IMG/VR virus record: IMGVR_UViG_3300042691_042003
Coordinates: 124,001 to 188,000 of that record
Direction: 5' to 3' (one strand)
Length of the DNA stretch: 64,000 bases
This document shows positions 4,942 to 29,428 of the stretch, piece after piece. Positions within the stretch are counted from its first letter, which is position 1. Each line of letters starts with the position of its first letter. The position numbers and the translations under genes were made by a program. The notes beneath the pieces are model-generated. The model did not search any database. It was not told the origin of the DNA and saw nothing but the letters and a program-made list of their open reading frames with translations.

Positions 4942-4952
4942 TATTTATTATA

Positions 4953-5681
4953 ATGAGAGAAAGAGACTTTAAAAAAGAGCTAGATTTCTTTTTAGAAAAA
5001 ATAAAAAGAAAAGAACCTTTTGCTTTTGCAAGGTATTCAGATGGAGAATACATGATTATGAATTCTTTAAACATAGATAAAGGCACTCAAGCTTTAGATG
5101 TTGATAAATGGTCATTTAATCTTCAAAATCAAATATTTTCAAAAGACCTTATTAAAACTTTATTTCATACTGAAATAAATTATTTTTATGCTATAGCTTG
5201 TCCTTGTTGTGGATTAGGTGTAGGACTAGCTGAATTTTATAAAAGAAATTTAAAATGCACAGAAGAAGAAATGACTTGGTCTAATCTTTGGATTAATTCT
5301 AATTACGAATCATTTATAAATTTCATAAAAAAATTAGATAGAAAAGTAAATCTATTGGTTAATTATGAAGGAGAAGATAAGGAATATCCATTTGAAGTCG
5401 ATAAATTTTTCAGCATTCCCGATGATTGTGTTAATTGGTATGAAAAAAATAGAGAATGGATTTTACAAAAAATGAAAGAAATTTCTAAAGAAGATGATCA
5501 GATATTTTTTGTTTCTGCCGGTCCTCTTTCTGAAATTTTAATTCATGAAATGTATTTAAATAATCCTAATAATCAATATATAGATACCGGTTCTTCTTTA
5601 GATATATTTGTTAAAGGACGAATAACAAGACCTTATCAAGGAGAAGGATCTAATTTTAAAAATCAAAAATGTTTATGGTAA
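4953..5681 (+). CDS. GT-D fold (DUF1792-like) glycosyltransferase candidate
   Basis: FARYSDGE resembles the GT-D R(F/Y)GDGE motif; SAGP and IDTGS motifs; ATG 4953 preferred over 4896. Confidence 0.6.
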   Translation: MRERDFKKELDFFLEKIKRKEPFAFARYSDGEYMIMNSLNIDKGTQALDVDKWSFNLQNQIFSKDLIKTLFHTEINYFYAIACPCCGLGVGLAEFYKRNLKCTEEEMTWSNLWINSNYESFINFIKKLDRKVNLLVNYEGEDKEYPFEVDKFFSIPDDCVNWYEKNREWILQKMKEISKEDDQIFFVSAGPLSEILIHEMYLNNPNNQYIDTGSSLDIFVKGRITRPYQGEGSNFKNQKCLW

Positions 5682-6385
5682 AAAATTTATCTCTTCTAGT
5701 ATATACTAATTCAAAATGTAAAGATTTACATGAAGGATATTTTAGTAGAATAAAAAAATTCTTTCCTTCATTAAAAAATATTTTTGCAACATCGGATGAA
5801 CCTATTGAAGGAATTAATTTCATAGAATATAATAACGATTCTTTCCATTATGAACAAATGATTAACGCATTAGATTTAATTCCTACTGATTATGTATTAT
5901 ACAATCAAGAGGATTATATTCTATTTGATTATGTACTCGAAGATAAAATAAAAAAATATTTAGAAATTCTAGAAAACGATAAAAATATTTCTTTTATACG
6001 ATTAATATATTCAGGTGTAAACGATTTTGAAATAAAACCTTATAAAGATGATCTTTTTTATTTAAATCCTAATTCTTTTTATTTCTACTCTACACAAGCA
6101 ACAATATGGAGAAAAGAAGACTTAAAACAAATGTTTTTATATTCGAAAGTAAAACAAATTTTTGACGAACCTGAAAATTCTTTTTACTTAAAATCTTTAA
6201 ATAAAAAAGGATTATGTTCGATTGAAAAAGGAAAAAAAGTAGGAGGGCATTATAATTCCTTAGTTTATCCTTATATTGCTACAGCTTTAGTTAAAGGTGA
6301 ATGGAATTATTCCGAATATCAAGAAGAGCTAGATGATTTTTTTAATGAATTTAAAATAAAAAAAGAATTAAGAGGAGAAAGATAA
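5669..6385 (+). CDS. GT-A-like hypothetical protein
   Basis: DYVLYNQEDY acidic motif, STQATIWRKEDL; lies within the glycan cluster. Confidence 0.55.
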   Translation: MFMVKNLSLLVYTNSKCKDLHEGYFSRIKKFFPSLKNIFATSDEPIEGINFIEYNNDSFHYEQMINALDLIPTDYVLYNQEDYILFDYVLEDKIKKYLEILENDKNISFIRLIYSGVNDFEIKPYKDDLFYLNPNSFYFYSTQATIWRKEDLKQMFLYSKVKQIFDEPENSFYLKSLNKKGLCSIEKGKKVGGHYNSLVYPYIATALVKGEWNYSEYQEELDDFFNEFKIKKELRGER

Positions 6386-6389
6386 AATT

Positions 6390-7154
6390 ATGGAATATAT
6401 ACAAGGTCAAAAATTTAAAGAATTAAACGATAATCATAAAATCTATTATTGCGATACACATAACGTTAATTCCTTTTTTAATAATATTAATTTTTCCCAT
6501 GAATTTATTTTAGTATCACATAATAGTGATGGTAGTATAACCGATAACCCAACTACCGAATATGATGCAGATATTAGGAAAATACCTAAAAATTTAAAAA
6601 AATGGTTCGGACAAAATTTAAAATGTAAATCAGATATTATAGAATCTATACCTATAGGATTAGAAAATTCTATGTGGTTTCCGGAAGAAAGAAAGATAGA
6701 AAAATTATTTAATAAAAAAAGTACAGAAAAAAATCTTAAAAATTTAGTTTATTTAAATCTAAATATAGATAACAATCCTTTAATCCGAGGACCTATTTAT
6801 AATATGTTACAAAATAAAAATTATGTTACAGTTCAATACGGTAGGAATGGATTAAATTATGATAATTATTTAGATAATTTATATAATCATTGCTTTATGA
6901 TTTGTCCTGAAGGTAATGGAATAGATGTTCATCAGCCGTGGGAATCTTTATATATAGGAACAATACCGATACAAAAAAAGAATATAAATAACGAAAATTG
7001 GAGAGAACTCCCTATTTGTTGGCTTGACGAATGGGAACAATTAAATGATGAAAATTTCCTATTATTAGAATATAAAAGAATATCCGAAAAAAAATTCGAT
7101 TTATCTAAATTGGATTTTAATTTTTGGAAGAATAAGATAAAAAATTCTATATGA
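6390..7154 (+). CDS. Exostosin/GT47-like glycosyltransferase
   Basis: ICPEGNGIDVHQPWESLYIGTIPI resembles the exostosin-family C-terminal motif. Confidence 0.65.
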   Translation: MEYIQGQKFKELNDNHKIYYCDTHNVNSFFNNINFSHEFILVSHNSDGSITDNPTTEYDADIRKIPKNLKKWFGQNLKCKSDIIESIPIGLENSMWFPEERKIEKLFNKKSTEKNLKNLVYLNLNIDNNPLIRGPIYNMLQNKNYVTVQYGRNGLNYDNYLDNLYNHCFMICPEGNGIDVHQPWESLYIGTIPIQKKNINNENWRELPICWLDEWEQLNDENFLLLEYKRISEKKFDLSKLDFNFWKNKIKNSI

Positions 7155-8200
7155 AGATAATTGTTATTGGAGCAGGTATTTTTGGAATTACAGTAGCATT
7201 AACATTATCAGAAAATAATTATGATGTTACCTTAGTAGAAAGAGAAGATGATATAATGAATAAAGCCAGTAAATGTAATCATAATAGACTTCATTTCGGA
7301 TTTCATTATCCAAGAAGTGAAAAAACTGCTAAGCAAAGTTTAGAAGGATATGATTTATTTTATAAAAATTTTTCAGATTCGATCGTAAAAAATTTTCCAA
7401 ATTATTATTTAATAGAAAAAAATAGCAAAATTAATAAAGATAATTTTAAAATATTTTGTGATAAATTAAATTTATCTTATCGAGAATTATTTCCTAAAAA
7501 TATTGAAATTAATAAAAATAATATTACATTTTGTGCAATAACAAAAGAGCCAATATTTGATTTTAATTCTATAAAAAATGATCTATATAATAGACTAAAA
7601 AAATCAAAAATCAATTTAATTTTAAATAAAAAAATAGAATCGAAATCAGATTTAAATGATTTCGATGTTGTAATTAATACAACATACAGTAATATTAATT
7701 GTATTAATAATCTTTTTAATATTCCTGAAATAAAATTAAAATTACAAGATGTTATAATTCCTATATTTAGAATGAATTCTGAAAAAATAGGATTAACTAT
7801 TATGGACGGTGATTATTGTTCAATAATGCCAAAAGGTTTTGAAGAAAATACTTTTTTATTATATCATGTAAAATATTCAGTCTTAAAAGAAAGTAAAGGA
7901 TATTTAGAAGACGAAAATTTAATAAATAATAATCCAGATTATATTAAGGATAAAATCGATAAAATTTATAAAAATTCAGAGAAATATTATCCTTTTTTAA
8001 AAAATTGTGAAAAAATTTCTTATTGGAGAACTACAAGAGCTTTACCTATAAATAATGATGATGAAAGATTAAGTACATTAACAATAAATAATATAGAAAA
8101 TAAAAAAATAATATCTCTTTTATCCGGTAAAATAACTACATGTTGGTTAATATCTAAAAAAATACTAAATATATTAAATGAAAACGATATTAATAGGTAA
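7151..8200 (+). CDS. FAD-dependent oxidoreductase
   Basis: IIVIGAGIFG dinucleotide-binding loop, ASKCNHNRLHFGFHYPR, C-terminal SGKITT. Confidence 0.85.
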   Translation: MKIIVIGAGIFGITVALTLSENNYDVTLVEREDDIMNKASKCNHNRLHFGFHYPRSEKTAKQSLEGYDLFYKNFSDSIVKNFPNYYLIEKNSKINKDNFKIFCDKLNLSYRELFPKNIEINKNNITFCAITKEPIFDFNSIKNDLYNRLKKSKINLILNKKIESKSDLNDFDVVINTTYSNINCINNLFNIPEIKLKLQDVIIPIFRMNSEKIGLTIMDGDYCSIMPKGFEENTFLLYHVKYSVLKESKGYLEDENLINNNPDYIKDKIDKIYKNSEKYYPFLKNCEKISYWRTTRALPINNDDERLSTLTINNIENKKIISLLSGKITTCWLISKKILNILNENDINR

Positions 8201-8942
8201 CGGTTATTGGGGATCTATAGTAAAAGAAAAATTAGAAAAACAAACCGATTTAATAGGGGTTTTAAATTCTAAAGATAATATTGATTCTTTTTTAAAAAAA
8301 GAAGTAGATTATATTTTTGTTTGTACTCCTACAAAAACCCATTACGAAATTGTTAAGAAATGTATAGAAAATCATAAAAATGTTTTTTGTGAAAAACCTT
8401 TTACGGGTAATTTCTTTAAAGCTAAAGAATTATATAAAATTTCAGAAAAAAATAATACAAAATTATTCGTCGATAATATTTTTTTATATCGCAATGAGTT
8501 AATTAATATTGAAAGTAATAATTTTAAAAAAATTAAATTTTTATGGAATAAATTTGAAAATCTATATAAAGAAGATCTGTTTACAACATTATTGTATCAT
8601 GATCTCTATTTATTATTAAATATAGCAAAAAATACATGGGACGTAGATTATTTAGAAATATTTGAAGATAAATTAAATTTAAAATTAAAAAATAAAAATT
8701 TAAAAGCAGAATTTATTTATGATAGAAATTATATAGGGAAAAAAGAAAAAAAGATATTTATAGACGATAAATTAATAGATTTTTCTAATCCTTCTAACGA
8801 CCCTTTATCAGAAATAATAGATAATTTAATAAAAAATAATATTAATTTTAATGAAAATAAAAAAATAACTTTGAAAACAATAAAATTATTAAATAAAATA
8901 CAAAATGAATCCATTTTACACACACCAAGAAGTATTAAATAA
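8178..8942 (+). CDS. Gfo/Idh/MocA-family NAD-dependent oxidoreductase
   Basis: LIGNGYWG, TPTKTH, VFCEKP. Confidence 0.85.
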   Translation: MKTILIGNGYWGSIVKEKLEKQTDLIGVLNSKDNIDSFLKKEVDYIFVCTPTKTHYEIVKKCIENHKNVFCEKPFTGNFFKAKELYKISEKNNTKLFVDNIFLYRNELINIESNNFKKIKFLWNKFENLYKEDLFTTLLYHDLYLLLNIAKNTWDVDYLEIFEDKLNLKLKNKNLKAEFIYDRNYIGKKEKKIFIDDKLIDFSNPSNDPLSEIIDNLIKNNINFNENKKITLKTIKLLNKIQNESILHTPRSIK

Positions 8943-9447
8943 AATTTTAGAATCTTTTGATTATTCAAAATCCGTACATTGTCTAGAATTCGGATCAGGA
9001 GAAGGTAGCTCATCAATTTTTTATAAATTTGCAAAATCTTATTCTAATTTATCTGTCGATTGTTTTGAACATGAAGAAGATTGGATGGATAACATGTCAA
9101 AAAAATATAAATTAGAAAATTATAATTTTAATCTTGTTAATTGGTCTAATATTAATTACGATGAATTAAAAATAAAAAAATATGATTTAATTTTTGTAGA
9201 TCAAGGTAATTGGAATGCTAGAATAGAAACAATAGATAAATTAATGAATTATTCTAAATACATTATACTACATGATTACTGTTATTATAATGGTTTTACA
9301 CCTGAAATAGGATATAATCCTGATAGTAATTACAATAATTTTGGAAAAGGGTCCTTTTTCGAAAAATATAATGAAGAATTTAGTATTAGTAGTTTTACCG
9401 ATCTTTATCCCCCTACATTAATTTTTAAATCGAAAAAATTATTTTAA
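8905..9447 (+). CDS. Class I SAM-dependent methyltransferase-like protein
   Basis: CLEFGSGEGS motif I, YDLIFVD, IILHD. Confidence 0.7.
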   Translation: MNPFYTHQEVLNKILESFDYSKSVHCLEFGSGEGSSSIFYKFAKSYSNLSVDCFEHEEDWMDNMSKKYKLENYNFNLVNWSNINYDELKIKKYDLIFVDQGNWNARIETIDKLMNYSKYIILHDYCYYNGFTPEIGYNPDSNYNNFGKGSFFEKYNEEFSISSFTDLYPPTLIFKSKKLF

Positions 9448-9451
9448 AATT

Positions 9452-10141
9452 ATGATTTTAAGTACAAAAGATATTGAAGATATTTATTCTCAATTTATTT
9501 TACCTAAAAAAAATGAGAATTATTTTAAAAAATATTCTTCTCTCCCAATTCATTTAAATAATAAAAAATGGAAATGGGAAGGAAAAGATTTTCCTAGAAT
9601 TATATCCCTCTTAGAATTTAAAGAATTTTTAGATAAAATGGAAAATCCTTTTTTTGAAAATGTGTTATCTTTTAATGGAGATTCTGATCCGGAATATGAA
9701 TTTTTAAAATACAAAAATTTAACAAATTATAATTATACAGATGATACTCTAAAATATGATTTACATAATTTAGAATTAGAAAAAAAAGATTTTGATTTTT
9801 TTATGTCTAATCAAACTTTAGAACATTTATATGACCCTTGTAAAGTTGTTAGAAATATTTACGATCATATGAAACCCGGAGGAATCGTTTATATGAATCT
9901 ACCGACAAATAATATGCCTCATTCTACACCATTTCATTATTATACAGGATTTACTCCTGTAGGTTTAGGTTGTATTTTTAAACAAGCAGGATTCAAAATA
10001 TTGGATATAGGTTTTTGGGGGAATCGGGAATATTTAGATTTTTCACTTTTTAAAAATATTTGGGCAGATTATACTCAAATGAATAATTTTTCTTCTGAAA
10101 TGGATAAAGAAGTAATTTCTTGGATTTTTGCTATAAAATAA
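9452..10141 (+). CDS. Methyltransferase type 11-like protein
   Basis: FDFFMSNQTLEHLYDP...MKPGG. Confidence 0.7.
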   Translation: MILSTKDIEDIYSQFILPKKNENYFKKYSSLPIHLNNKKWKWEGKDFPRIISLLEFKEFLDKMENPFFENVLSFNGDSDPEYEFLKYKNLTNYNYTDDTLKYDLHNLELEKKDFDFFMSNQTLEHLYDPCKVVRNIYDHMKPGGIVYMNLPTNNMPHSTPFHYYTGFTPVGLGCIFKQAGFKILDIGFWGNREYLDFSLFKNIWADYTQMNNFSSEMDKEVISWIFAIK

Positions 10142-10155
10142 AATTTAAATAAATT

Positions 10156-10872
10156 ATGAATTATGACGCGGTAATTTTATCATCAGAGAAGGATTATATT
10201 AAATTAGATTTTTTATTGGATTCTTTAATAAATTTAGACCCAAAACCTGAAAATATCTTTGTTATAAGTCCTACTGAAATCAAAGAAAAAAGAAAAGAGG
10301 TTAATTATTTTTTAGATGATGAAGTCCTTAAATTTAAAAAAGAAAATCTAAAATTTAGACCTAATTGGATTAAACAACAATTCTTAAAGCTATTTCAAGA
10401 TATTACAAAAAACGACTATTACCTAATTTTAGATTCAGATATTTTTTTAAATAAAAAAATAGAAATCTTTAAGAATAATAAACCTAATTTTCTTCTTTCG
10501 GTAGATCAAAACCATAAACCCTATTTTGATTTTTTAGAAAATTTTGGAATAAAGAAAATTTATGAAAGATCTTTTATATCTGAAATAATGTTATTTAATA
10601 AAAAAATCATAAGAAGGTTTTTAGAGGATTCTAATTTAACAGTCGATTCTTTTATTAATAAATCTATAGAAATAATTAACGATAATTGTTATATTTCGGA
10701 ATTTGAATTTTATGGAAATATGGTTCTTAAGTATTATCCTGATTTATATGATTTCACTATTTTAAATACAAGAGTTATAGGAAAACATGAAGATTGGAAT
10801 AAAAATGAAATATTGCAAACAATAAATAATAATCAAGATTTAGATATCATATCATATCACACATGGAAATAA
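10156..10872 (+). CDS. DUF6492-like GT-A protein
   Basis: WIKQQFLKL, YLILDSD, SEFEFYGN. Confidence 0.6.
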   Translation: MNYDAVILSSEKDYIKLDFLLDSLINLDPKPENIFVISPTEIKEKRKEVNYFLDDEVLKFKKENLKFRPNWIKQQFLKLFQDITKNDYYLILDSDIFLNKKIEIFKNNKPNFLLSVDQNHKPYFDFLENFGIKKIYERSFISEIMLFNKKIIRRFLEDSNLTVDSFINKSIEIINDNCYISEFEFYGNMVLKYYPDLYDFTILNTRVIGKHEDWNKNEILQTINNNQDLDIISYHTWK

Positions 10873-11759
10873 ATATCGTATTAATTCATATCGGTACAAT
10901 TTATCCGGATCACATGGATGATTGTATAGATCAATTATTAAAATTTAATCTTAAAGTTCATTTAGTAATAAGCTCTTCTTTAGTAGAGAAAATTAAAAGT
11001 AAAAAAATAATTTTATCTAAGGTAGAAGATTATACAGACGAAAAATATAATTCTTTTTTTATAGAAAAGTATGATAAAAATTTCACAGAAAATTTTAGAG
11101 ATGGATTTTGGAATTCTACTTCTTCAAGATTTTTTATTCTAGAAAATTATACAAGAAAAAATAATTTACAAAATTTTTATCATTTAGAACATGATAATCT
11201 TATTTTTAATAATTTAGAGAATGTAACGAATATTTTAAAAAATAAAAATGAAGAAATGTTTATAGTTATTGATTCGGAATCCAGATGTATTCCTTCAATA
11301 ATATTTATAAAAAATTATAAAATTTTAGAAATCTTAACTAATTTTATTTTTAATAATCGTTATAATAATGATATGGAAAACTTATTTTTATTTTTTCAAA
11401 TGAATAGAAATATAGTAGGTAATTTACCTATACTTCCTGACGATCATAATTTAAATTTGATTAGTAAAACTGGAATTATTGCTAGTAATAATATAAATTA
11501 TAGTAATCTTTACAAGGAATTAAAAATTGTTTTTGATGGTGCAGCTTTAGGTCAATATATAGGTGGCATAGATCCTAGAAATGATAGTGGTAACACTATA
11601 GGTTTTGTAAATGAAACTACAATTTTTAATGTTTCTGAAGTAGGATTTTCTTGGGTTAATTATAAACCAACCTTAAATATTAATAATCGTATTATTGATG
11701 TTTGTAATTTACATATACATTCTAAAAATTTAAACTTAAAAAATCTTTTAAAATTATAA
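10863..11759 (+). CDS. Glycosyltransferase-like hypothetical protein
   Basis: TSSRFFIL, HLEHDN, FDGAALGQYIGGIDPRN, NLHIHSK; motif set typical of phage glyco-island proteins. Confidence 0.55.
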   Translation: MEINIVLIHIGTIYPDHMDDCIDQLLKFNLKVHLVISSSLVEKIKSKKIILSKVEDYTDEKYNSFFIEKYDKNFTENFRDGFWNSTSSRFFILENYTRKNNLQNFYHLEHDNLIFNNLENVTNILKNKNEEMFIVIDSESRCIPSIIFIKNYKILEILTNFIFNNRYNNDMENLFLFFQMNRNIVGNLPILPDDHNLNLISKTGIIASNNINYSNLYKELKIVFDGAALGQYIGGIDPRNDSGNTIGFVNETTIFNVSEVGFSWVNYKPTLNINNRIIDVCNLHIHSKNLNLKNLLKL

Positions 11760-11790
11760 AACATATAAAATTATAAAGTAAAATAATAGG

Positions 11791-12462
11791 ATGATGGATA
11801 ATATAAACATTGATAAAGAAAAAATATGTATACTTTACACAGGGAAAAGCGAATTTATAAACGAAATAAAAAAAATTAAGAATTATAATAATTATAATTT
11901 TATTTTTTCTACATGGAAAGGTAATGAAAGTAAATACGAAAAGAATGATGTAGTCGTTTTTAATGATACTTCTAATTTAGCGATAAAAACAAGTTTAGAA
12001 TTACAAAGAATAACTATTTTAGAAGGATTAAAAAAATCAAAAGAATTAGGTTTTAGAAGAACTTTAAAATTAAGAGATGACTTAATTCCTACTAATTTAG
12101 ATAAATTTTTAGAATTAATAAACAATGAAAATATTAATATATTATGCTGGCATGAACATAATATAGGGTTACCTGGTTATTTTGTAGATTATCTAATTTC
12201 AGGAGAAACTGATTTATTAATAGACGTATATTCTAATATAGATATAAATTTTCATCAAGTATCAGAAGCCCCTTATACTAAATCATTATTAAGATATTCA
12301 GATAAAATAAAATTTTTCCTTTATGATTTAAATCAAAATAATAATGATTTATTTTGGTTTAGGATAGGTGATTTTTTAAGTAGCTACAATCCTAATTTAA
12401 TTCATACCAGTAAGTATATGCATTTAGAAAATTACGAAAATATTAAAAAAGAATATTTATGA
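11791..12462 (+). CDS. WavE-like polysaccharide synthesis protein
   Basis: FSTW and LKLRDD resemble the WavE STW and KxRSD motifs; VDYLISG. Confidence 0.5.
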   Translation: MMDNINIDKEKICILYTGKSEFINEIKKIKNYNNYNFIFSTWKGNESKYEKNDVVVFNDTSNLAIKTSLELQRITILEGLKKSKELGFRRTLKLRDDLIPTNLDKFLELINNENINILCWHEHNIGLPGYFVDYLISGETDLLIDVYSNIDINFHQVSEAPYTKSLLRYSDKIKFFLYDLNQNNNDLFWFRIGDFLSSYNPNLIHTSKYMHLENYENIKKEYL

Positions 12463-13184
12463 ATATATTAATACCTATGGCTGGAAGAGGAGAACGATTT
12501 AGTAATAATGGTTTTGACATTCCTAAACCTCTAATAGAATTAGAGGGTAAAACTATGATAGAATTAGCAATAAAATCTCTAAATATAGAAGGTAATTATA
12601 TATACGTAACATATAGATACACTAATAAAGAATTTAATCAAAAATTAGAAGAAATTCTTAATAGGATAACTCCTAATTGCACCATTATAAAAATAGATTA
12701 TATTACAGAAGGTCCTGCTTCCAGTGCATTATTAGCAAAAAAATACATAGATAATGAAGAAGAATTAATCATAACTAATTGTGACCAAATAATGTCATGG
12801 GATTCCAAAAATTTTTTAGAATTTATCAAAAAAACTGACAAAGAAGGTATAGTTGTTACGTATAATTCTTCTACCGAAAAGAATTCATATGTTAAATTAA
12901 ACGAAATAGGAGATGCAATAGAGTTAGCCGAAAAAAAGGTTATAAGCGAATTTTCCTTAAATGGTATACATTATTGGAAAAAAGGAAAATACTTTGTAGA
13001 ATCGGCAGAAGATATGATATCAAAAAATATAAGAGTAAATAATGAATTTTATATTTCTATGACATATAATGAAATGATTGAAAAAAAACTTAAAGTATCT
13101 AATTATCATATAATAAATAATCATCATCACGCAGTAGGTACTCCAGAAGATCTAAAAGAATATTTAAAAAATGGAAGTAAGTAG
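12459..13184 (+). CDS. Sugar-phosphate nucleotidyltransferase (NTP_transferase)
   Basis: ILIPMAGRGERF..PKPLI, TEGPAS, ITNCDQ, AEKKVIS, EFYIS, GTPEDL. Confidence 0.88.
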   Translation: MNILIPMAGRGERFSNNGFDIPKPLIELEGKTMIELAIKSLNIEGNYIYVTYRYTNKEFNQKLEEILNRITPNCTIIKIDYITEGPASSALLAKKYIDNEEELIITNCDQIMSWDSKNFLEFIKKTDKEGIVVTYNSSTEKNSYVKLNEIGDAIELAEKKVISEFSLNGIHYWKKGKYFVESAEDMISKNIRVNNEFYISMTYNEMIEKKLKVSNYHIINNHHHAVGTPEDLKEYLKNGSK

Positions 13185-13491
13185 ATTCGAAAATTATAAA
13201 GACGGCTGGTTTGTTGGTGATTTTTTTCCTTCTGCATATAAAACCAATCTATTCGAGGTATGTTACAAATTTCATAAAAAAGGTGAAGTTTGGGATAAAC
13301 ATTATCATAAGGTTTCAACCGAAATAAATTATTTAATTGAAGGAGAGATGATTATTCAAGAAAAGAAATTAAAAAGTGGAGATGTATTTGTCATACATCC
13401 TTATGAAATTGCAGATCCGGAATTTATTTCTGATTGTAAATTAATTATTATAAAAACCCCTTCTAGCACAAAAGATAAATACACAATTTAA
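13171..13491 (+). CDS. Cupin-fold protein
   Basis: GWFVGDF, HYHKVSTEINYLIEG (HxH..E), GDVFVIHP. Confidence 0.8.
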   Translation: MEVSRFENYKDGWFVGDFFPSAYKTNLFEVCYKFHKKGEVWDKHYHKVSTEINYLIEGEMIIQEKKLKSGDVFVIHPYEIADPEFISDCKLIIIKTPSSTKDKYTI

Positions 13492-13498
13492 AAAAGAT

Positions 13499-14731
13499 AT
13501 GGCAATAAATATTTTCACAAAAGATATTAATTACGAAAATTATTTTATCGTAAAATATTATTTAAAAGGAAGAACTTCCTTAAAAACAGCAGCTTGGAAT
13601 TTGGCTATAGGACAAAGTATAGGAAATCCTAATAATCGAAGCGTTTGGGAAACCGACCAAATGTTTCTAGATCATAGTTGTTTTATTTTAGAAGATGAGA
13701 AATATCTAGAATCGGTAAAAGAAGGAGAAATAGAAATTGCTTTTCCTTTAGCAAATTTAAATCTAGAAGAAGATGGAATATCTCAAATTCTTTGTCATAT
13801 TGCAGGTGGACAAGTAGATATCTTAGAATTAGAAATGTGTCATGTTTTAGATATTAATTTACCGAAAAAAATAGAAGATAAATTTAGATTAAAACCTGCA
13901 TTTGGTATTGATGGTTTTAGGAAATTTAATGGAGTTAAAGAAAAACCATTTTTTGGAGGAATTATTAAACCTAAGGTAGGAATGAGTCCTAAAATTCTTT
14001 TAGAAGCAGTGAAAGAGATGGTAGATGGAGGAGTTAATTTTATTAAAGAAGATGAATTATTAGGAAATCCTGATCATTGTAAATTATCAGAAAGGGTTCC
14101 TCTAATCACTAATTGGTTAACAAAAAATGCACCAAATGTTATATACACTTTTTGTATTAATGGAGATTCTCCTTATGCATTAGAAAGAGCTAATTTCGTA
14201 GAGAAGGAAGGAGGAAATGGAATTCATATTAATGTTTGGAGTGGATTAGGGATTTATAGAGCGATTAGAAAACAAAATCCTAACTTATGGATTCATTTTC
14301 AAAAAAGTGGAGATAAATTCTTTACTGATCGTAGATCTCCTTTTCATATATATTGGCCGGTTATTTGTAAAATTGCTGGATGGTCCGGTGCTGATTCGAT
14401 ACATGCTGGAATGATTGGAGGATATATGAATCAAGACGATCAAGAATTATCAGATTCTTTAAAAGTTTTATGGAAGTATAATATTGTTCCTGCTCTAAGT
14501 TGTGGAATGCATCCAGGTTTAGTTCAATACATAAATCAATTATTAAATAGTTATGATTGGATGGCTAATGTAGGAGGTGCAATGCACGGTCATCCTATGG
14601 GAACATTATCTGGAGGCCTTGCAATGAGACAAGCAATTGACGGAAATATTGACAAACCTGAATATAAGGCTGCTATAGAAAAATGGGGTACAAAAGAATT
14701 TTCTTCGGATTTAGCTTATAGAATATTTTAA
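13499..14731 (+). CDS. RuBisCO-like protein (form IV, non-carboxylating)
   Basis: GGIIKPKVGMS, GGVNFIKEDE, DSIHAG, PALSCG and VGGAMHGHP motifs; K334 equivalent is Tyr and H294 equivalent is Gln. Confidence 0.92.
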   Translation: MAINIFTKDINYENYFIVKYYLKGRTSLKTAAWNLAIGQSIGNPNNRSVWETDQMFLDHSCFILEDEKYLESVKEGEIEIAFPLANLNLEEDGISQILCHIAGGQVDILELEMCHVLDINLPKKIEDKFRLKPAFGIDGFRKFNGVKEKPFFGGIIKPKVGMSPKILLEAVKEMVDGGVNFIKEDELLGNPDHCKLSERVPLITNWLTKNAPNVIYTFCINGDSPYALERANFVEKEGGNGIHINVWSGLGIYRAIRKQNPNLWIHFQKSGDKFFTDRRSPFHIYWPVICKIAGWSGADSIHAGMIGGYMNQDDQELSDSLKVLWKYNIVPALSCGMHPGLVQYINQLLNSYDWMANVGGAMHGHPMGTLSGGLAMRQAIDGNIDKPEYKAAIEKWGTKEFSSDLAYRIF

Positions 14732-16992: not shown

Positions 16993-17226
16993 ATGTCATT
17001 TAAGAAATTTTTCGAATTTTTGCTAGAAGGCAAGAAAAAAGATTCTAAAGACATAGAGGAAGTATCAGCACCAGAACCAAAAGTTAATGCTGATACTCCT
17101 CTTGCTTGTCCTAAATGCGGATCTTTTAAATTACCTTGTGAATGCTATACAGACGATTATTATAATTCCAAGCTTTCACAGCAAACACCTAGACCCAATA
17201 AAATATTTAAACCAAAAAAGAAATGA
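16993..17226 (+). CDS. Small Cys-containing protein with capsid-targeting-like leader
   Basis: MSFKKFFEFLLE leader; CPKCG...PCEC; GATAAATA at 16970. Confidence 0.65.
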   Translation: MSFKKFFEFLLEGKKKDSKDIEEVSAPEPKVNADTPLACPKCGSFKLPCECYTDDYYNSKLSQQTPRPNKIFKPKKK

Positions 17227-17513
17227 ATAAAATAGATTCTTACATAAGAACAAATTTTCATTACATTGCTCTTTTCTTTTTGATTTTTAATTTTTTTAAT
17301 TCTTGTGATAGAGAAATAGGAAGACTCTCTAAAAGAATTGCAAAGCTAGAAGTTAAAATTGATTCACTCACTCAAGTAGTAGTTACTCGTAAAGATCTTA
17401 AAATTGAAGGTCTTCGTTCAGAAAAAAGGATGATCCAGTCTACCGATCGTAAAATCCTTGATGTTAATAGACAATCAGAAATTGATAGAGAGATTGAATC
17501 CCTATCCAAATGA
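17223..17513 (+). CDS. Membrane-anchored or lipoprotein coiled-coil protein
   Basis: Hydrophobic stretch ending FFNSC (possible lipobox), followed by a coiled coil. Confidence 0.6.
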
Positions 17514-18694
17514 ATTCATTAGATAAACAATACAAAGATCTACTTCAAACAATTCTAGATTTTGGAGTAGAAAAGAAAGATCGAACAGGAACCGGAACTA
17601 AATCAATTTTTGGTTACACTATTCGTCATTCTATGAAAGAAGGATTCCCACTTCTTACTACAAAGAAGATGCATTGGAAATCTATTGTCACTGAACTCCT
17701 TTGGTTTCTTCGAGGTGATACGAATATCAAATTTCTAGTAGATAATGGATGTCATATTTGGGATGGAGATGCGTATAAGAATTACGCATGGAAAACATCT
17801 ATGGATTCCGATGGACAACTAACAAAAGAAGAATTCATTGAACGTATTAAAATCGACGATGAATTTGCAAAACATTGGGGTGATCTAGGCCCAATTTATG
17901 GTAAGCAATGGAGAAATTGGAATGGTAAGCAGGTTTCTGTAATGGATGGAAAGGTAATGACGACAATTATAGATCAAATCTCTGATCTAATTGAAAATAT
18001 TAAAACAAATCCAGATAGTCGACGTCTAATGGTAAGTGCATGGAACCCTGTGGAATTAGATCAAATGGTTCTTCCTCCTTGTCATTATGGATTTCAAATG
18101 TACACGAGGGAGCTTTCTCTAAAAGAGAGAATGGAATTATGGGAAGCACTTCCTGATCGAGATGTTATGGATTTTCCTATAGGTCCTCTTTCCGACGAAC
18201 AATATCATGAAGTACTAACACAAATTGGTGTTGAAGAAAGAGCTATTTCACTTATGTGGAATCAACGTTCAGTCGATACTTTTCTGGGTCTACCTTTTAA
18301 TATTGCTTCTTACGGACTTCTTCTTTCTATTATTGCAAGAGAGGTTGGTATGGTTCCTGATCAACTTATAGGTAATCTAGGAGATGTTCATCTTTATTTA
18401 AATCATATCGAACAAGCAAAAGAACAAATTGGCAGAGATTATACATGGGAAGAACAAGTAGAATGGGTAATGAAAAATACCGATGTAGAAATGGAAAATC
18501 TTTATATTGTAGAAGAAATTTCTAAGGAAACTACACCTAAAAATACAAGACAACCCTTTCATCTTCCTACTTTAAAAATGGCAGATCATTCCATGTACGA
18601 AGGAAATTTTCTTCCTCAATATTGGTTTCCTTCAGATTTTGAAATTCTAAATTATCAATCCCATCCACCTATTAAAGCTCCTCTTTCTAATTAA
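17510..18694 (+). CDS. thyA: Thymidylate synthase (with insertions)
   Basis: [63 protein letters not shown]. Confidence 0.97.
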
Positions 18695-23337: not shown

Positions 23338-23539
23338 AAAAGGTTTTGAATATAAAAGAGTTGCCGATTTAGAAGCAGATAAGTTAATTACTATGGGTTG
23401 GGATTTTTGTCCTAAATCTGAATGGAAAATTAACGTAAGAGATTTTGGTAAAGTAAAAGAAGAAACAAATTCTAGCGAGGATAAATATAAAAAGAATAAG
23501 AAGAATCGCAAGAATGAAACCACTTCTGAAGTACAATGA
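23312..23539 (+). CDS. Hypothetical basic protein
   Basis: Operonic ORF; GWDFCPKSEWK. Confidence 0.55.
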   Translation: MKTIKKKTEKGFEYKRVADLEADKLITMGWDFCPKSEWKINVRDFGKVKEETNSSEDKYKKNKKNRKNETTSEVQ

Positions 23540-24803
23540 TTTTGTAAATCTAATATTAGAATCAAAAACCTTAAATGAAGGAGGGGCTTATGGTCATTTA
23601 AATCATCCTTTTGATGATTTAGATCTCACATTTGCCGATCTACAAGAAATGTTAGATGCTACCATTAATGGAGCATTTGGGCCTGAAAATTTTGTTTCTG
23701 AAAAGACGGACGGACAAAATATCATGGTTTCTTGGAAAGGAGGAAGATTAATAGCTGCTCGTAATAAATCACATCTAAAAAATCAAGGAGCTAATGCCCT
23801 TTCGGCCGAGGCATTAGCTCAAATGTTCGCAGGCAGAGGAGAAATCGAGATTGCATTTACTACTGCAATGGATGATCTTTCTTCTGCCATTGCGGCATTT
23901 TCTCCTCAAGATAAAGATCGTTTTTTTGCTGAAGGAAAGAAATTTGCTTCGGTAGAAGTTATTACCCCTAAAACTCAAAATGTCGTTCCTTATGGTTTGA
24001 AAATGCTTGTTTTTCACGGAACAATGGAATATGATGAAGACGGTAACCCCATAGGTGAAGATAAACAAGCTGGAAGAGATTTAGGTAAAATTGTTAATGA
24101 TATTAATGTTGCAGTTCAGAAGAATTTCTTTATAAGAGGTCCTCACGATTTAGAAATAAAACCCCTTCCTAATACTAAAGCTAGAGAAGCTTATTATCGT
24201 AAGAAAATCGATACGGTAATGAAAGAAAGTGGATGCTCACCTTCTTCTACAGTAGGTGATTATGTAATAGGGATGGCTACTAATATTTTTAAAAGAGAAA
24301 CTAATAAAGCAGGAATTACAATCCCTTTTGACGTAGAAACAAAACTTATTAGAAGGATTGCAAGTATAGACGATTCTAAAACATATACAATTTCTCAAAT
24401 TAAAAAAGATTTAGGATCTGATGCTTCTTGGTTTATTGATTTAGAAAAGAAAGACTTTAAGAAAATTCAAAGAGAAATTTATGCTCCTTTAGAAAATATT
24501 TTTCTAGAAATTGGTACCGAAATGATGAAAAATATGTCTTCTTTTCTTTCTGCAAATCCTACACAAGCTGCAGAAGAAATGAAAGCAGAAATTGATCGAG
24601 TTATTTCTTCCATTAGAACTAATGGAGATGCTTCTGATGTTGAAAAGCTAGAACATGAGCTGAATCGTATTGCTACTTCAGGTGGTCTAGAATCAATTGT
24701 TCCTACTGAAGGAATAACATTTTTATTCAAAGGAAAGCTATATAAATACACAGGAATTTTTGCTCCGATCAATCAAATAAGAGGAATGCTTACTTATAGA
24801 TAA
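23514..24803 (+). CDS. DUF6267-like protein with covalent nucleotidyltransferase (ligase-like) motifs
   Basis: LNEGGAYGHLNHPF; EKTDGQN (KxDG, K64); EGITF..KLYKYTG near the C-terminus. Confidence 0.7.
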   Translation: MKPLLKYNDFVNLILESKTLNEGGAYGHLNHPFDDLDLTFADLQEMLDATINGAFGPENFVSEKTDGQNIMVSWKGGRLIAARNKSHLKNQGANALSAEALAQMFAGRGEIEIAFTTAMDDLSSAIAAFSPQDKDRFFAEGKKFASVEVITPKTQNVVPYGLKMLVFHGTMEYDEDGNPIGEDKQAGRDLGKIVNDINVAVQKNFFIRGPHDLEIKPLPNTKAREAYYRKKIDTVMKESGCSPSSTVGDYVIGMATNIFKRETNKAGITIPFDVETKLIRRIASIDDSKTYTISQIKKDLGSDASWFIDLEKKDFKKIQREIYAPLENIFLEIGTEMMKNMSSFLSANPTQAAEEMKAEIDRVISSIRTNGDASDVEKLEHELNRIATSGGLESIVPTEGITFLFKGKLYKYTGIFAPINQIRGMLTYR

Positions 24804-24827: not shown

Positions 24828-25706
24828 ATGAAAAGGATTTTTTCTCTTATATGTCTTAGTGTTTTAATCTCTTCTTGTGCTTTACAAGGCAATGAAAAAT
24901 CCGAAGAAATTCAACCTAGTAAAGAATCTATTAATAATGCTGCTAGAATAGCTACGGATAATCTTCTTTTAGGTAATCCTTCTAATGCACAAACTTCAAC
25001 TTCATTTCCTACAAATTATTTAATGCAAAAAACTCAGTTTGCATTAAGTTATAATCGAGATCAAGGAAAACCTAATTGGGTTTCCTGGCATTTAGATCCT
25101 ACTTGGGTGGGATCCTCTGATAGATGTAATTGTTTTTCTTCGGATGCCTTACTTCCTTCAGGATGGTATCGAGTAACCTCGACTTCATATACAAATTCGG
25201 GGTTTGATAGAGGTCATAATTGTCCTTCTGCTGATAGAACTCTCAATTCTACTGATAATAAAGTAACTTTTTTAATGACTAATATGATGCCTCAAGCTCC
25301 TAATAATAATCAAAGAACTTGGGCTAATTTAGAGAATTATTGTAGGACTCTTATGAATCAAGGAAATGAGCTGTATATTATTTGTGGATCTTATGGATCT
25401 GGAGGATATGGTTCTAATGGATTCAAAACTACAATAGATAATGGTAGAGTAACAGTTCCTAATAGAATTTGGAAAGTAATAGTTGTAATTCCTCAAGGAT
25501 CAAATGATATTTCTAGAATTACAACTTCAACAAGGGTTATAGCTTTAAATACACCTAATGCTAATGATCTTCTTACCACATGGGGATCATACAGGACATC
25601 TGTAGATGCAATTGAATCTGTAACTGGGTATGATCTTCTTTCTAATATCCCTGATGCAATAGAAAACGTTCTAGAAACAAATATAGATAATGGACCAACT
25701 CAATAA
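24828..25706 (+). CDS. DNA/RNA non-specific endonuclease, lipoprotein
   Basis: Lipobox LISSC; LSYNR...PNWVSW, GFDRGHNCPSAD, TNMMPQ, NQRTW. Confidence 0.92.
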   Translation: MKRIFSLICLSVLISSCALQGNEKSEEIQPSKESINNAARIATDNLLLGNPSNAQTSTSFPTNYLMQKTQFALSYNRDQGKPNWVSWHLDPTWVGSSDRCNCFSSDALLPSGWYRVTSTSYTNSGFDRGHNCPSADRTLNSTDNKVTFLMTNMMPQAPNNNQRTWANLENYCRTLMNQGNELYIICGSYGSGGYGSNGFKTTIDNGRVTVPNRIWKVIVVIPQGSNDISRITTSTRVIALNTPNANDLLTTWGSYRTSVDAIESVTGYDLLSNIPDAIENVLETNIDNGPTQ

Positions 25707-26124: not shown

Positions 26125-26646
26125 ATGAGAAAATATATATTTTTCTTTGGGATTATTGGATTAGCTATTTCCCTTATGTCAGCTACTCTTAAAAGAGAAA
26201 GCAGTTATTTCGTTAGCGAAACCGATGAAACTATTTTTAGTGAAGTGGCAGAAATAGTTTATCCTAGAGACGAAGCTTGCAATCTTAAAAATATTAAAAA
26301 ATACGCTAGAATTTTTCTAAATCCTAGATACATTTTAGAATCTTTTGCTTATAAACCATATACAAATTTTGTAGATAAAAGAAGTATAAAGGCAGTTTTT
26401 TCTGTTTATGCTGGGGAAACTTATAGAGTTATAGATTTAAGTGAAGGATTTTCAAAACCAGTAATGGTAAATATTTTTGATTCTGATGGTAAAAAAATAT
26501 ATTCATCTGAAGGTAGTTCTAAAATGTTTGATTTCCTTGCTGAAAATTCAGGTGAATGTACTATTGAATGGATTTATCGAAGAGAGGATTCTCAAAAACC
26601 CGATAAAAAATGTGTAGCTTTTGCTGTAGGATATACAAATGAATAA
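26125..26646 (+). CDS. Secreted hypothetical protein
   Basis: Signal-peptide-like N-terminus and beta-rich body. Confidence 0.65.
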   Translation: MRKYIFFFGIIGLAISLMSATLKRESSYFVSETDETIFSEVAEIVYPRDEACNLKNIKKYARIFLNPRYILESFAYKPYTNFVDKRSIKAVFSVYAGETYRVIDLSEGFSKPVMVNIFDSDGKKIYSSEGSSKMFDFLAENSGECTIEWIYRREDSQKPDKKCVAFAVGYTNE

Positions 26647-27217
26647 TTTACTCACATATGAAGATTTTCTTTTTGAAGATGTAAGAGGAAATAAAGTTTG
26701 TATTTTCCCTGGTAGGTTTCAGCCTTTTCATCTTGGTCATATAGCAGCCTTAGAGAGAACCTCTAAGGTTTTCGGTGCTAAAGTCATTCCTATACAGATC
26801 CTTTCTAAAAGTAATAAATCTCCTATTCCTGATTCAGTTCTTATTAAAATGGGAAATGCAGTTGCTAAAGAATTTCACTTTATAGAAAAGTACATTCTTT
26901 ATCCGCAAGGCCTTATTACGTTTATTCCTGAAATGGTTAAGCTTCTTCAAGAACAAGGTTATTATCCAATTGGTGTAGGTTGTGGATCCGATAGACAAAA
27001 AGATTATGAAAGACAAGTTGCTAAATATATTTTAGCTCCTGATTCAGAAATACAAATTCCTCAATTTGAAGTTGCTATGGTTGACGAAAGAACCGAAGGA
27101 GGACCTTCAGGAACTAAAGTTCGTGAAGCTATTCAAGCTGATGATGAAGAAAAATTTAAAGATCTAACACCTAAATCGATACATTCGTTTTATAAAGAAT
27201 TGAAAAAGTATATATGA
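26639..27217 (+). CDS. HIGH-superfamily (cytidylyltransferase-like) nucleotidyltransferase
   Basis: FPGRFQPFHLGH (HxGH), CGSDRQKDY, SGTKVREAI; leader MNNLLTYEDFLFE. Confidence 0.82.
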   Translation: MNNLLTYEDFLFEDVRGNKVCIFPGRFQPFHLGHIAALERTSKVFGAKVIPIQILSKSNKSPIPDSVLIKMGNAVAKEFHFIEKYILYPQGLITFIPEMVKLLQEQGYYPIGVGCGSDRQKDYERQVAKYILAPDSEIQIPQFEVAMVDERTEGGPSGTKVREAIQADDEEKFKDLTPKSIHSFYKELKKYI

Positions 27218-28695
27218 AACTTCTAAAATTTAAAGATTTCGTAAGTAATTTTACATTTATTAATGAAGCCAGAGTTTGGGCTCATCCTGATAGGACTTAC
27301 GTTTTTAATCCTACCAATCATTCTAAAGTCCCTAATGATATCATTGATTTGACATTTAATTCTTGCTCTTCAGATGATATGCAAGGAGAACATAGTATGT
27401 TTTTTATTTCCGGTGATTCAAGGGTCGTGGAAATCGATCATGAAGAAGCTCTAAAATTATTAAAAAATAAAGATTATTCAATTCTTAGAGATAATGAAGG
27501 AAGGAACGTATTTTTAGTAGTTTCGGAAAGTAAAACAGGAATCTTAACTGAATTAAAAAAATCAAACGAAACTACTACTAACGTTAAAGAAGGTTTAGTA
27601 GTTTATTTCTATTATTCTAATATTCATGAAATTCCTAGTATTCAAAATGCTGAATCAATAATAAAAACTCTTAAAAATTTATCAATACCTTCAGAATCAC
27701 TAGATCCTAAAAGCGTAAGGGAGATTCAAGATTATTTAAACAATTTATTTCTAGATAAAGCTGCTATTAAGTCTTTAACCGATTTTTGGTCTGTAGGATA
27801 TGCTCTTAGTAATATTCTAGATAATAAAAAGCATATAATTTTAAGATCTAATTTATTTAATTCTATTCGTAGATTAGGAAATAAACTAACTAGATTGCCT
27901 GCTGATAAATGGTGTCCAGGCGATATTTATATTACTGATAGAAATTACTTAGGAGTAATTTCTGATTATGTTTCTGAAATAGAAAAAAATATACAAGATG
28001 ATAGCATTGCAAAGCTAAACGATTTATTTTCAGATGAAATGATGATTAATAATGAAAAAGGATCGGCCATAGGTTCTGTTGTTGCTATCTCACTTAAACA
28101 AGAAGAAGCTCAGGCAGGTAAAGCTAAAGAGTTCTTAAAAACTCTTACAAAAGATCAAAAACAATACAACGTTACAAAAGCTGAGTATAAATTGGATGAC
28201 TCTGAAATTGAATCTATGATCGAAGATTTAAGAAAAAAAATAGCTGACGCTTGTTCCAAGTCGGAAATTACAATTAATTTAGAGCAAGACACTAATTATA
28301 AAAACAGCAATCCAATATCCTTAAGGAATAAATTTGCTTCTTTAAAAGTTACTGCAAAGTTATTAGAAAATCCTGCTGAAATAGATGATAATATTCTCAA
28401 AAGCACTGCTTTTGCAATGAGTCTTACAGGAGTTAATCCTACTTTCTTTAAATTTATGGGAAGTTCTAAAGGAAATGCAAAAGTAGATAAATTCCCTAAA
28501 GGAGAAATGATTTATCTTCTCGATCATGGATTAGGAGATAAAAGATCTTCCATCGATATTGTAGATAGGAATTCTAATGCTGAAGTTATGTTTAGATTTA
28601 GGATTAAAAAAGGAGAATATGAAAAGCCTATTATTCTAAAATGCAGGCCTAATGGAGGTGTACAGTCAACTTTAGAAATAGAAAAAATGAAATAA
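27214..28695 (+). CDS. Large protein with leader and a possible PD-(D/E)xK-like core
   Basis: MKLLKFKDF...FINE leader; DKWCPGDIY and VAISLKQ. Confidence 0.6.
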   Translation: MKLLKFKDFVSNFTFINEARVWAHPDRTYVFNPTNHSKVPNDIIDLTFNSCSSDDMQGEHSMFFISGDSRVVEIDHEEALKLLKNKDYSILRDNEGRNVFLVVSESKTGILTELKKSNETTTNVKEGLVVYFYYSNIHEIPSIQNAESIIKTLKNLSIPSESLDPKSVREIQDYLNNLFLDKAAIKSLTDFWSVGYALSNILDNKKHIILRSNLFNSIRRLGNKLTRLPADKWCPGDIYITDRNYLGVISDYVSEIEKNIQDDSIAKLNDLFSDEMMINNEKGSAIGSVVAISLKQEEAQAGKAKEFLKTLTKDQKQYNVTKAEYKLDDSEIESMIEDLRKKIADACSKSEITINLEQDTNYKNSNPISLRNKFASLKVTAKLLENPAEIDDNILKSTAFAMSLTGVNPTFFKFMGSSKGNAKVDKFPKGEMIYLLDHGLGDKRSSIDIVDRNSNAEVMFRFRIKKGEYEKPIILKCRPNGGVQSTLEIEKMK

Positions 28696-28999: not shown

Positions 29000-29428
29000 A
29001 TGAAAATAAATACTTTCGAACAATTTTTGAATGAATCTGCAGTTAGATTTACTTCAAATCCTTCACACGCTCAGCTAGCAGCTGATGGCCTTTCTCTACT
29101 CGATCAAATTCGTGTTTGGCATTGGCAAGTAACTATTGGAGACCTTCATAAAGCTCTTGGAGATTTTTATGATGAATTTTCTGGATTAAACGATACCCTA
29201 GTTGAAGCAGTTATGGGTAAGTACGGTAGATTCAGTATTAAAGGAACTAAATCACAAATCCTTGTTGATTACGATGTAGCTACTTTTGATTCTGCAATTG
29301 CTAATTACGAATCTCTTTACACAAATGATTATCGTAAGCTTTTTACTTCTGATCCTGAAATCTGCAATATTCTTGACGAAATCGTAGCAGAAATGCAGAA
29401 GCTTAAGTACCTTTCAACAATGTCTTAA
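29000..29428 (+). CDS. Ferritin/Dps-like four-helix protein (DUF5856-like) with leader
   Basis: HWQ...HKALGDFYD...D.LVEAVMGKYGR; L.NILDEI...KLKYL; leader MKINTFEQFLNE. Confidence 0.75.
   Translation: MKINTFEQFLNESAVRFTSNPSHAQLAADGLSLLDQIRVWHWQVTIGDLHKALGDFYDEFSGLNDTLVEAVMGKYGRFSIKGTKSQILVDYDVATFDSAIANYESLYTNDYRKLFTSDPEICNILDEIVAEMQKLKYLSTMS

Follow-up and report, generated by a model that had tools for sequence, protein, structure and literature searches.

A predicted RNA-ligase-type nucleotidyltransferase with a T4-like N-terminal leader encoded by a jumbo phage

The open reading frame (ORF) at positions 23514..24803 (+) of a stretch of 64,000 nucleotides, which corresponds to positions 124,001 to 188,000 of the IMG/VR virus record IMGVR_UViG_3300042691_042003 and is referred to as the window throughout, encodes a protein of 429 amino acids (aa). 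Its predicted fold, the ranking of its structural matches and a set of invariant, collinear motifs support the assignment to a divergent RNA-ligase-type enzyme, as an earlier note made from the DNA letters had proposed. Its architecture makes the protein a new form of a known enzyme type, and none of the databases searched carries an annotation for it. As a full account we favour, with some reserve, a capsid-delivered RNA ligase, the RNA being probably tRNA. The source genome is a single viral contig of 246,081 bp with direct terminal repeats and a G+C content of 31%, and is that of a T4-related jumbo phage. The ORF is a real one, for which the standard genetic code is sufficient and an alternative code not required.

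The residues to which the earlier note had drawn attention, namely EKTDG with K64, SVEV, E399-G-I-T-F and K411, are present at exactly these positions of the translation: E63-K64-T-D66-G67, S146-V-E148-V, E399-G400-I-T-F403, and K406, K408 and K411. The elements of the gene are as follows.

23514..24803 (+): gene of the RNA-ligase-like covalent nucleotidyltransferase (P0001); translation, AlphaFold2 model, top structural matches RNA ligases
23514..23579 (+): residues 1-22, the leader, in which a short amphipathic helix is followed by a flexible linker (last residues L-N-E); candidate for a capsid targeting sequence with a prohead-protease site
23580..23618 (+): family-specific N-terminal block, residues 23-35, GGAYGHL-x-HPF-D/E-D, with near-invariant H28 and H31
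23700..23720 (+): motif I, E63-K64-T-D66-G67-Q-N, with K64 as the lysine predicted to accept the nucleotidyl group
23754..23765 (+): motif Ia-like A-A-R83-N, aligned with the motif Ia region of T4 Rnl2
23943..23969 (+): motif III, F-A-S-V-E148-V-I-T-P, aligned with the FEFVAP segment of T4 Rnl1 (E159)
24003..24020 (+): motif IIIa, M-L-V-F167-H168-G, aligned with FYVFD of T4 Rnl2
24174..24677 (+): mainly helical module, residues ~221-388, between motifs IIIa and IV (DSSP)
24702..24722 (+): motif IV, P-T-E399-G400-I-T-F403, aligned with E227-G228 of T4 Rnl1
24729..24755 (+): motif V, K406-G-K408-L-Y-K411-Y-T-G; K411 aligned with K240 of T4 Rnl1

For the analysis of conservation an alignment of 50 homologs with 34-86% identity was used, in which sixteen columns are invariant. 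K64, D66, G67, R83, E148, H168, E399, G400, F403 and K411 are identical in all 50 sequences, and N84 (48/50), F167 (40/50), K408 (37/50) and K406 (32/50) are partially conserved. This invariance shows that a chance occurrence of the K-x-D-G tetrapeptide is not the explanation. N-terminal to motif I, the block of residues 23-33 (GGAYGHL-x-HPF) is near-invariant as well, with G23, G24, G27, H28, H31 and P32 each conserved in at least 90% of the sequences. Sub-threshold matches to PF09414 (RNA_ligase) were found in ten of the 50 members (best E 0.0055), and this was the most recurrent family in the scan.

The family is very large and confined to phages, all members being viral as far as records show. 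A word-indexed search returned 1,197 homologs, every one of them labelled ‘hypothetical’, and when 1.84 billion cluster representatives were searched exhaustively with a profile, 1,826 proteins were obtained at E<=0.001, of which 689 were at E<=1e-30, where each of the 1,826 members stands for a cluster at 50% identity. The 429-aa protein has no match in Pfam, including the described RNA-ligase sequence families PF09414 and PF09511, nor in PHROG and NCBIfam, and neither phmmer nor the family profile retrieved a relative from the PDB. A ligase-like domain of this type is not mentioned in the surveys of polyvalent proteins (PMC5512222), of jumbo phages or of NAD-ADPr, and the survey of polyvalent proteins does not cover an HxGH partner of it either.

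An AlphaFold2 model, for which the 50-homolog alignment served as input, reached a pLDDT (predicted local distance difference test) of 91.6 and a pTM (predicted template modelling score) of 0.86. Beta-rich segments comprise residues 62-82, 143-183 and 400-412. The long helical insert which the earlier note had placed between the motifs was recovered by DSSP as a mainly helical region of residues ~221-388, with helices at 221-239, 247-266, 272-282, 293-339, 349-370 and 373-388. Likewise, the postulated N-terminal leader appears in the model as a short helix followed by a low-confidence linker (residues 1-22), the flexible residues 15-22 having a pLDDT below 50. The comparison of the predicted fold with known structures, which the earlier note had named among the ways to check its proposal, identified a nucleotidyltransferase of the ligase/capping-enzyme type, and RNA ligases were the best matches. 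With Foldseek (best E 2.4e-3) the top ~40 matches in the PDB consisted of RNA ligases, DNA ligases and capping enzymes and nothing else. In the Foldseek-independent structural search VIA, comprising 48,161 representative chains, ranks 1-12 were occupied by ATP-dependent RNA ligases throughout (Z 7.3-9.6, 179-215 residues aligned over model residues 24-429), among them Naegleria NgrRnl, fungal Trl1, trypanosome TbREL1, T4 Rnl1, T4 Rnl2 and archaeal Rnl3; DNA ligases and capping enzymes followed below with Z 5.4-6.7. The structural alignments to ligases skip the helical insert. In the viral structure library BFVD the family’s own members came first, followed by viral proteins named RNA ligase. 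Judged from the model, the protein almost certainly has a ligase-type fold.

The family profile was then aligned by hhalign with the sequences of T4 rnlB and rnlA, taken from the T4 GenBank record. The E-K-T-D-G-Q-N of the family falls on E-K-I-H-G-T-N of T4 Rnl2, A-A-R-N on its motif Ia region and L-V-F-H-G on its F-Y-V-F-D. With the insert cut from the profile, the alignment with T4 Rnl1 pairs K64 with K99, E148 with E159, E399-G400 with E227-G228 and K411 with K240. We take the residues of T4 Rnl1 and Rnl2 named in these alignments to be the catalytic ones; the catalytic residues of the T4 RNA ligases have reportedly been established by mutational and structural work of the Shuman laboratory. 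The motifs proposed in the earlier note could thus be assigned as I (K64), III (E148), IV (E399-G400) and V (K411), all of them invariant and collinear with T4 Rnl1.

The protein shares the characteristic elements of the covalent nucleotidyltransferase superfamily: motif I of the form K-x-D-G, the motifs Ia, III, IIIa, IV and V in this order and the nucleotidyltransferase fold. DNA ligases and capping enzymes possess an additional oligonucleotide/oligosaccharide-binding (OB) domain and motif VI. Here only 18 residues follow K411 (412-429, forming one helix), so that the model contains neither an OB or other beta-barrel domain nor motif VI, a layout that speaks against DNA ligases and capping enzymes and agrees with RNA ligases. 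The place of the accessory module is taken by the helical insert of residues ~221-388. It is inserted between motifs IIIa and IV, whereas in the matched structures of Rnl1, Rnl2, Rnl5 and Trl1 the accessory domain is appended.

T4 Rnl1 (gp63), the ligase which repairs breaks in tRNA anticodons, is a phage enzyme of the same fold (Z 8.9, 190 residues aligned), likewise lacks an OB domain and has collinear motifs with a locally similar motif III segment (E-x-V/I-x-P). It differs in that its helical tRNA-binding domain sits after motif V; such a C-terminal domain is absent from the 429-aa protein, in which the helices precede motif IV, and the VIA match to T4 Rnl1 (9do4) is restricted to chain residues 13-251. 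Moreover, T4 Rnl1 has no capsid leader and no link to an HxGH adenylyltransferase, and the two sequences are not significantly similar (no PF09511 match). Similar fold matches were obtained for the nick-sealing ligases of the Rnl2/REL1 and Rnl5 (NgrRnl) groups (5cot, Z 9.6; 1xdn, Z 9.1; 1s68 and 2hvq, Z 8.8), and in the case of T4 Rnl2 the E-K context of motif I and motif Ia align. Their accessory domain, in contrast, is C-terminal (Rnl2) or N-terminal (Rnl5) and not internal, and the similarity stays below the Pfam threshold. On account of the absent OB domain, the internal insert and the N-terminal block with two histidines we treat the family as a new clade within the known superfamily. As a separate observation, a second ligase-like ORF of 407 aa is encoded outside the window (G000:C1:54287-55510 (+); L004:1426-2649). 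It matches PF09414 with E 0.002, contains a motif I-like E-K-L-N-A-T with alanine for the usual glycine and adjoins a helicase-like gene.

A probable sister family is DUF6267 (PF19782), a domain which has no assigned function, is not mentioned in the literature searched and has so far been annotated only via a fused ‘cytidylyltransferase’ domain. ESM Atlas clusters with DUF6267 superpose on the model with a TM (template modelling) score of 0.71-0.79 over ~349 residues. The order of elements is the same: HLEHLED, collinear with the GGAYGHL-x-HPF block, then KWDG, VFHTYY, a helical region, PEGFVAI and finally K-L-V-D and F-S-R-A-N. Two proteins of the T4-like cyanophages S-PM2 and S-SZBM1, on which PF19782 scores 375-435 bits, were inspected.

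L017:2486-4261: S-PM2d138, DUF6267 with K-W-D-G and P-E-G-F-V-A-I
L016:2978-4171: SSZBM1_141, DUF6267 with K-W-D-G and P-E-G-F-V-A-I

Both are probably unrecognised ligase-type enzymes. The S-PM2 record places its DUF6267 protein in a T4-like gene cluster (T4-LIKE GC 71). As in the family described here, a ‘cytidylyltransferase’ accompanies the domain, fused in S-PM2 and adjacent in S-SZBM1; the domain order in S-PM2, however, is reversed. The PF19782 model does not match the 429-aa protein and found nothing in the source genome at E<=10 (family cut-off 27 bits) or in Microcystis phage Mel-JY01, and the family profile in turn found nothing in S-PM2, S-SZBM1 or T4. The relationship of the two families is therefore drawn from fold and motif collinearity.

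The strongest contextual signal, absent from the earlier note, is the recurrent fusion or adjacency of the ligase-like domain to an adenylyltransferase resembling NMNAT and PPAT. Among the best 150 cluster representatives 30 are stand-alone proteins and 120 are fusions, 61 of which measure 1,000 aa or more (longest 1,930 aa). When 51 segments outside the ligase domain, drawn from 43 of the fusion proteins, were scanned with Pfam, CTP_transf_like was found in 31, DUF5661 in six, a P-loop kinase (AAA_33/Zeta_toxin, also KTI12) in three, a PolyA_pol head with RNA-binding domain in two and HD in one. One relative, P0268, unites adenylyltransferase, DUF5661, kinase, HD, CCA-adding enzyme and ligase-like domain within one polypeptide, a combination that corresponds to the heal-and-seal toolkit of RNA and tRNA repair. 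In the cultured phage Mel-JY01, where the family is represented by WWT39297, the ligase-like domain and the partner form a single protein whose sole annotation is ‘cytidylyltransferase like protein’; in two relatives (L009 and L010) the partner lies 1.5-1.8 kb downstream of the ligase homolog. The window contains the partner as a separate gene.

26639..27217 (+): partner, a 192-aa adenylyltransferase of the HxGH (‘HIGH’) class, NMNAT/PPAT-like, with strict leader (PF01467)

Its profile matches the archaeal NMNAT 1f9a (E 2.8e-10), and its AlphaFold2 model (pLDDT 88.5) has NadD, NMNAT and PPAT as top Foldseek matches, which identifies it as an HxGH-class adenylyltransferase of the small-molecule type. 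A complex prediction for the 429-aa protein and the 192-aa partner gave a score of 0.00 and is evidence neither way. With 500-1,930 aa the fused relatives resemble the polyvalent phage proteins, which string many domains together (Iyer et al., 2017; PMC5512222). In their domain content they repeat the kinase-phosphatase-ligase logic of bacterial Pnkp and yeast Trl1. The 429-aa protein, in contrast to all of these, stands alone. Many of the polyvalent relatives (P0124-P0268) share recurring unannotated segments, e.g., D-I-N-I-P-V-x-V-G-D-T-I and G-M-P-T-I-N-G-K, and at least one of them contains an intein. A small AAA_33 kinase ORF is located 23 kb upstream of 23514..24803.

The N-terminus of the protein resembles the targeting peptides of T4 internal proteins, a diverse set with the targeting sequence alone in common (PMC3012670). 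In the T4 record IPII and IPIII start with MKTYQEFIAE, and IPI starts with MKTFKEF and has a longer linker ending in ITE. Homologs of the 429-aa protein have a common N-terminal consensus of the LLKFKDF type with a linker of variable length, and the leader of the protein itself is a longer, IPI-like variant in which K-Y-N-D-F-V is followed by L-E16 or N-E22. For a genome-wide count a strict core was defined as aromatic, x, acidic or polar, aromatic, aliphatic, x and E within the first 12 residues. It occurs at the N-terminus of 27 ORFs of the genome and three times elsewhere in ~76,000 positions, an enrichment of ~130-fold. In total there are ~30 leader ORFs, about a tenth of the genes, with a peptide of the type MKN-L-x-T-F/Y-E-E-F-L-N-E. 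Those with the strict core all lie on the + strand, in clusters at 48-57, 73-79, 92-96, 147-153, 183-187 and 238-241 kb of the genome. The clusters at 73-79 and 92-96 kb flank the head genes (protease at 82 kb, capsid gene at 84 kb). The protease is of the gp21 type found in T4 proheads (PF03420, Peptidase_S77, 48.7 bits; G000:C1:82026-82358) and adjoins the Gp23-type capsid gene. The leader-bearing ORFs of the window are the following.

26639, 29000, 59655-59912, 60905-61102, 61820-62617 and 62614-63210 (+): strict leader (pattern match)
23514, 27214, 821-1117 and 16993-17226: looser leader variants

In three related phages nine, eleven and four leader-bearing ORFs were found around the ligase homolog; in one of them (L009) the leader heads the ligase homolog itself, and the close homolog P0081 carries the strict form. 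The system is similar to T4 IPI, IPII, IPIII and Alt in a short N-terminal peptide of the type MK-x-x-(F/Y)-x-E-F-(I/L)-x-E, of which the 429-aa protein carries a looser, longer variant, in the gp21-type protease and in variable islands of genes with nothing but the leader in common. It is different in its cargo, here a predicted RNA-repair enzyme, and in its ~30 leader genes, far more than in T4. T4 packages an anti-restriction protein and an ADP-ribosyltransferase; its RNA ligases are not known to be packaged. The combination of a T4-like N-terminal peptide with a gp21-type protease suggests that the protein is probably packaged, trimmed and injected, and by analogy with T4 we lean towards its delivery in the capsid. 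Of the delivery with the genome which the earlier note had put forward, the leader, the protease and the island of leader ORFs make a plausible case, from which packaging itself would follow by that analogy.

A mechanism consistent with these data would begin with the attack of K64 on the alpha-phosphate of ATP, provisionally taken as the cofactor, to form an enzyme-AMP intermediate. The AMP would be passed to a 5'-phosphate end, and attack by a 3'-OH would seal the break, the nucleotide being held by R83, E148, F167/H168, E399 and K411 as in T4 Rnl1 and Rnl2. In most relatives the NMNAT/PPAT-like HxGH adenylyltransferase is either part of the same chain or encoded next to the ligase, and the two enzymes may work together. 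The ligase would be loaded into the prohead via the N-terminal peptide, trimmed after E16 or E22 and injected with the DNA. Ahead of phage gene expression it could then rejoin broken RNA of host or phage, the most probable target being tRNA cut by defence ribonucleases. These steps differ in probability. An active enzyme forming lysyl-NMP is very likely and a polynucleotide ligase likely, and as the substrate RNA is given a slight preference, which is drawn from the missing OB domain, the match ranking and the rare fusions. The tRNA repair role suggested as possible by the earlier note would fit the fusions to PNK-like kinase, HD and CCA-adding enzyme in relatives, the substrate itself being a conjecture.

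Several observations weigh against this account. None of the sequence methods reaches significance against any known ligase family, and the hhalign scores against T4 Rnl1 and Rnl2 are non-significant (E 0.03-0.19) because each template is one sequence, so that these alignments serve for collinearity only. The Foldseek E-values are modest and the TM-scores low, the latter because of the helical insert, and VIA Z-scores of 8-10 are only just above the noise level quoted by the tool; the case is therefore carried by the uniform list of matches and the invariant catalytic residues. The same residues make an inactive structural or scaffold protein which merely retains the fold extremely improbable. 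Non-catalytic derivatives of the fold do exist, such as the cap-binding domain of snurportin (Z 5.7), but all catalytic positions are invariant in 50 diverse sequences whose identity is otherwise no more than 34-45%, a pattern typical of active enzymes. With respect to the substrate, the fusions hinting at RNA are rare (kinase in three and CCA-adding enzyme in two of the 51 segments), and the source genome has no kinase or phosphatase nearby and no CCA-adding enzyme. An enzyme which seals nicks or joins ends of the injected DNA or repairs damage by host nickases would be well placed if packed against DNA in the head. It would also have a fold common to DNA ligases, which are among the structural matches, and three of the 50 members weakly match the NAD-ligase adenylation domain. 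We nevertheless regard action on DNA as distinctly unlikely, given the absence of an OB domain and motif VI, the higher rank of RNA ligases and the relatives fused to CCA-adding enzyme and PNK-like kinase. The source genome already encodes a full NAD-dependent DNA ligase, which also speaks against action on DNA and led to the rejection of a role as replicative DNA ligase. Transfer of a nucleotide without ligation, by which RNA 5' ends or another phosphate substrate would be capped or adenylylated with a nucleotide from the NMNAT-like partner, would account for the constant pairing with a small-molecule adenylyltransferase that classical RNA repair leaves unexplained. Capping enzymes, which have the same fold and are among the weaker matches, need an OB domain, however, and kinase, HD and CCA-adding fusions are the classical end-healing partners of a ligase; with RNA ligases as the best matches, this explanation is very improbable.

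Doubts about packaging favour an RNA-repair ligase which remains in the cytoplasm and in which the N-terminal motif has another function, e.g., as a conserved region at the start of translation or as a handle by which recombination shuffles genes. The leader of the 429-aa protein is looser and longer than the strict pattern, and packaging is argued by T4 analogy only. Furthermore, the L-x-E preceding the GGAYGH block, sometimes replaced by LLLM or LLQC, is kept inside fusion proteins and may therefore belong to the domain instead of forming a cleavage site, and the DUF6267 protein of S-SZBM1 is not among the 30 virion proteins reported. Such an unpackaged ligase is nonetheless unlikely in view of the ~130-fold N-terminal enrichment of the motif, the glutamate that follows as at T4 cleavage sites, the gp21-type protease and the leader clusters flanking the head genes. 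In addition, a ‘cytidylyltransferase’, the counterpart of the partner enzyme, has repeatedly been found in virion proteomes of T4-like cyanophages (PMC10665884, PMC9146016). An extension of the capsid-delivered RNA ligase, which we consider a rather improbable one, is that ligase and NMNAT-like partner form a self-contained injected module in which the partner supplies or recycles the cofactor of the ligase. Either the ligase would be charged from NAD+ and the partner would remake NAD+ from the released nicotinamide mononucleotide and ATP, or the partner would run backwards from NAD+ to ATP. If so, RNA repair could continue in cells drained of NAD+ or ATP by abortive-infection defences, and the module would be without precedent both as an NAD-linked RNA ligase system and as RNA-repair machinery shown to travel in a virion.

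The neighbouring genes of the window include the following.

24828-25706 (+): DNA/RNA non-specific endonuclease (Endonuclease_NS; PF01223, E 1.2e-51), with a lipoprotein-type signal peptide ending in cysteine
27214..28695 (+): 493-aa protein with a looser, longer leader; no family match, only hypothetical viral clusters in the Atlas
29000..29428 (+): 142-aa protein with strict leader; DUF5856 is present in the homolog of relative L010
30190..31629 (+): Ro60/TROVE-like RNA-binding protein with vWA domain (PHROG 850, E 2.9e-148; DUF2828/DUF7788/VWA_CoxE)

The Ro60-like gene, to which the earlier note had pointed, does lie 5.4 kb downstream; it is not a conserved neighbour, being absent within the +/-8 kb flanks in three relatives, and was rejected as a conserved partner. 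Neither tRNA genes (ARAGORN) nor Rfam families were found in the window, so that it offers no Y-RNA-like partner for this gene. Outside the window ARAGORN detected five tRNA genes (Met x2, Leu x2, Arg) at G000:C1:204550-211695 and 225490-225887 and, in the same regions, a candidate tmRNA-like element with a 29-residue tag. The endonuclease gene was rejected as a functional partner because of its lipoprotein signal peptide and its lack of conservation beside homologs; its product is probably exported and stands outside the ligase module.

Further features of the genome concern its host and its accessory genes. The capsid protein is closest to that of an uncultured 462-kb phage (55% identity), followed by Prevotella Lak megaphages (41%) and Tenacibaculum phage pT24 (34%), and these relatives suggest a host in the Bacteroidota. 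A RuBisCO large-chain-like protein of 410 aa (13499-14731 (+); PF00016, E 1.2e-32) is unusual in a phage and could be involved in sugar or nucleoside metabolism. Window positions ~4000-14000 form an AT-rich island (G+C 0.21-0.25 compared with 0.31 for the genome) with genes for a metallo-beta-lactamase fold, FAD/NAD oxidoreductases, a SAM methyltransferase and DUF6492; the island has the appearance of a cassette for the modification of sugars or small molecules and was possibly acquired separately. A thymidylate-synthase homolog of 394 aa (17510-18694 (+)) matches the Pfam model in two stretches, which indicates that, compared with ordinary ThyA, it contains ~100 inserted aa.

When phages counter host anticodon nucleases and other defence RNases, it is RNA ligases that seal the broken RNA. 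The family described here would add to these enzymes a new and very abundant clade whose domain layout has no precedent and whose constant adenylyltransferase partner is unexplained, and it would give the first functional lead for DUF6267. New RNA ligases are, moreover, useful as reagents. If the leader targets the capsid, a ready-made RNA-repair enzyme would be injected together with ~30 other proteins. The idea of T4 internal proteins would then be widened from anti-restriction to RNA repair, and the leader set, which may define a large group of injected proteins, would provide a collection of candidate effectors.

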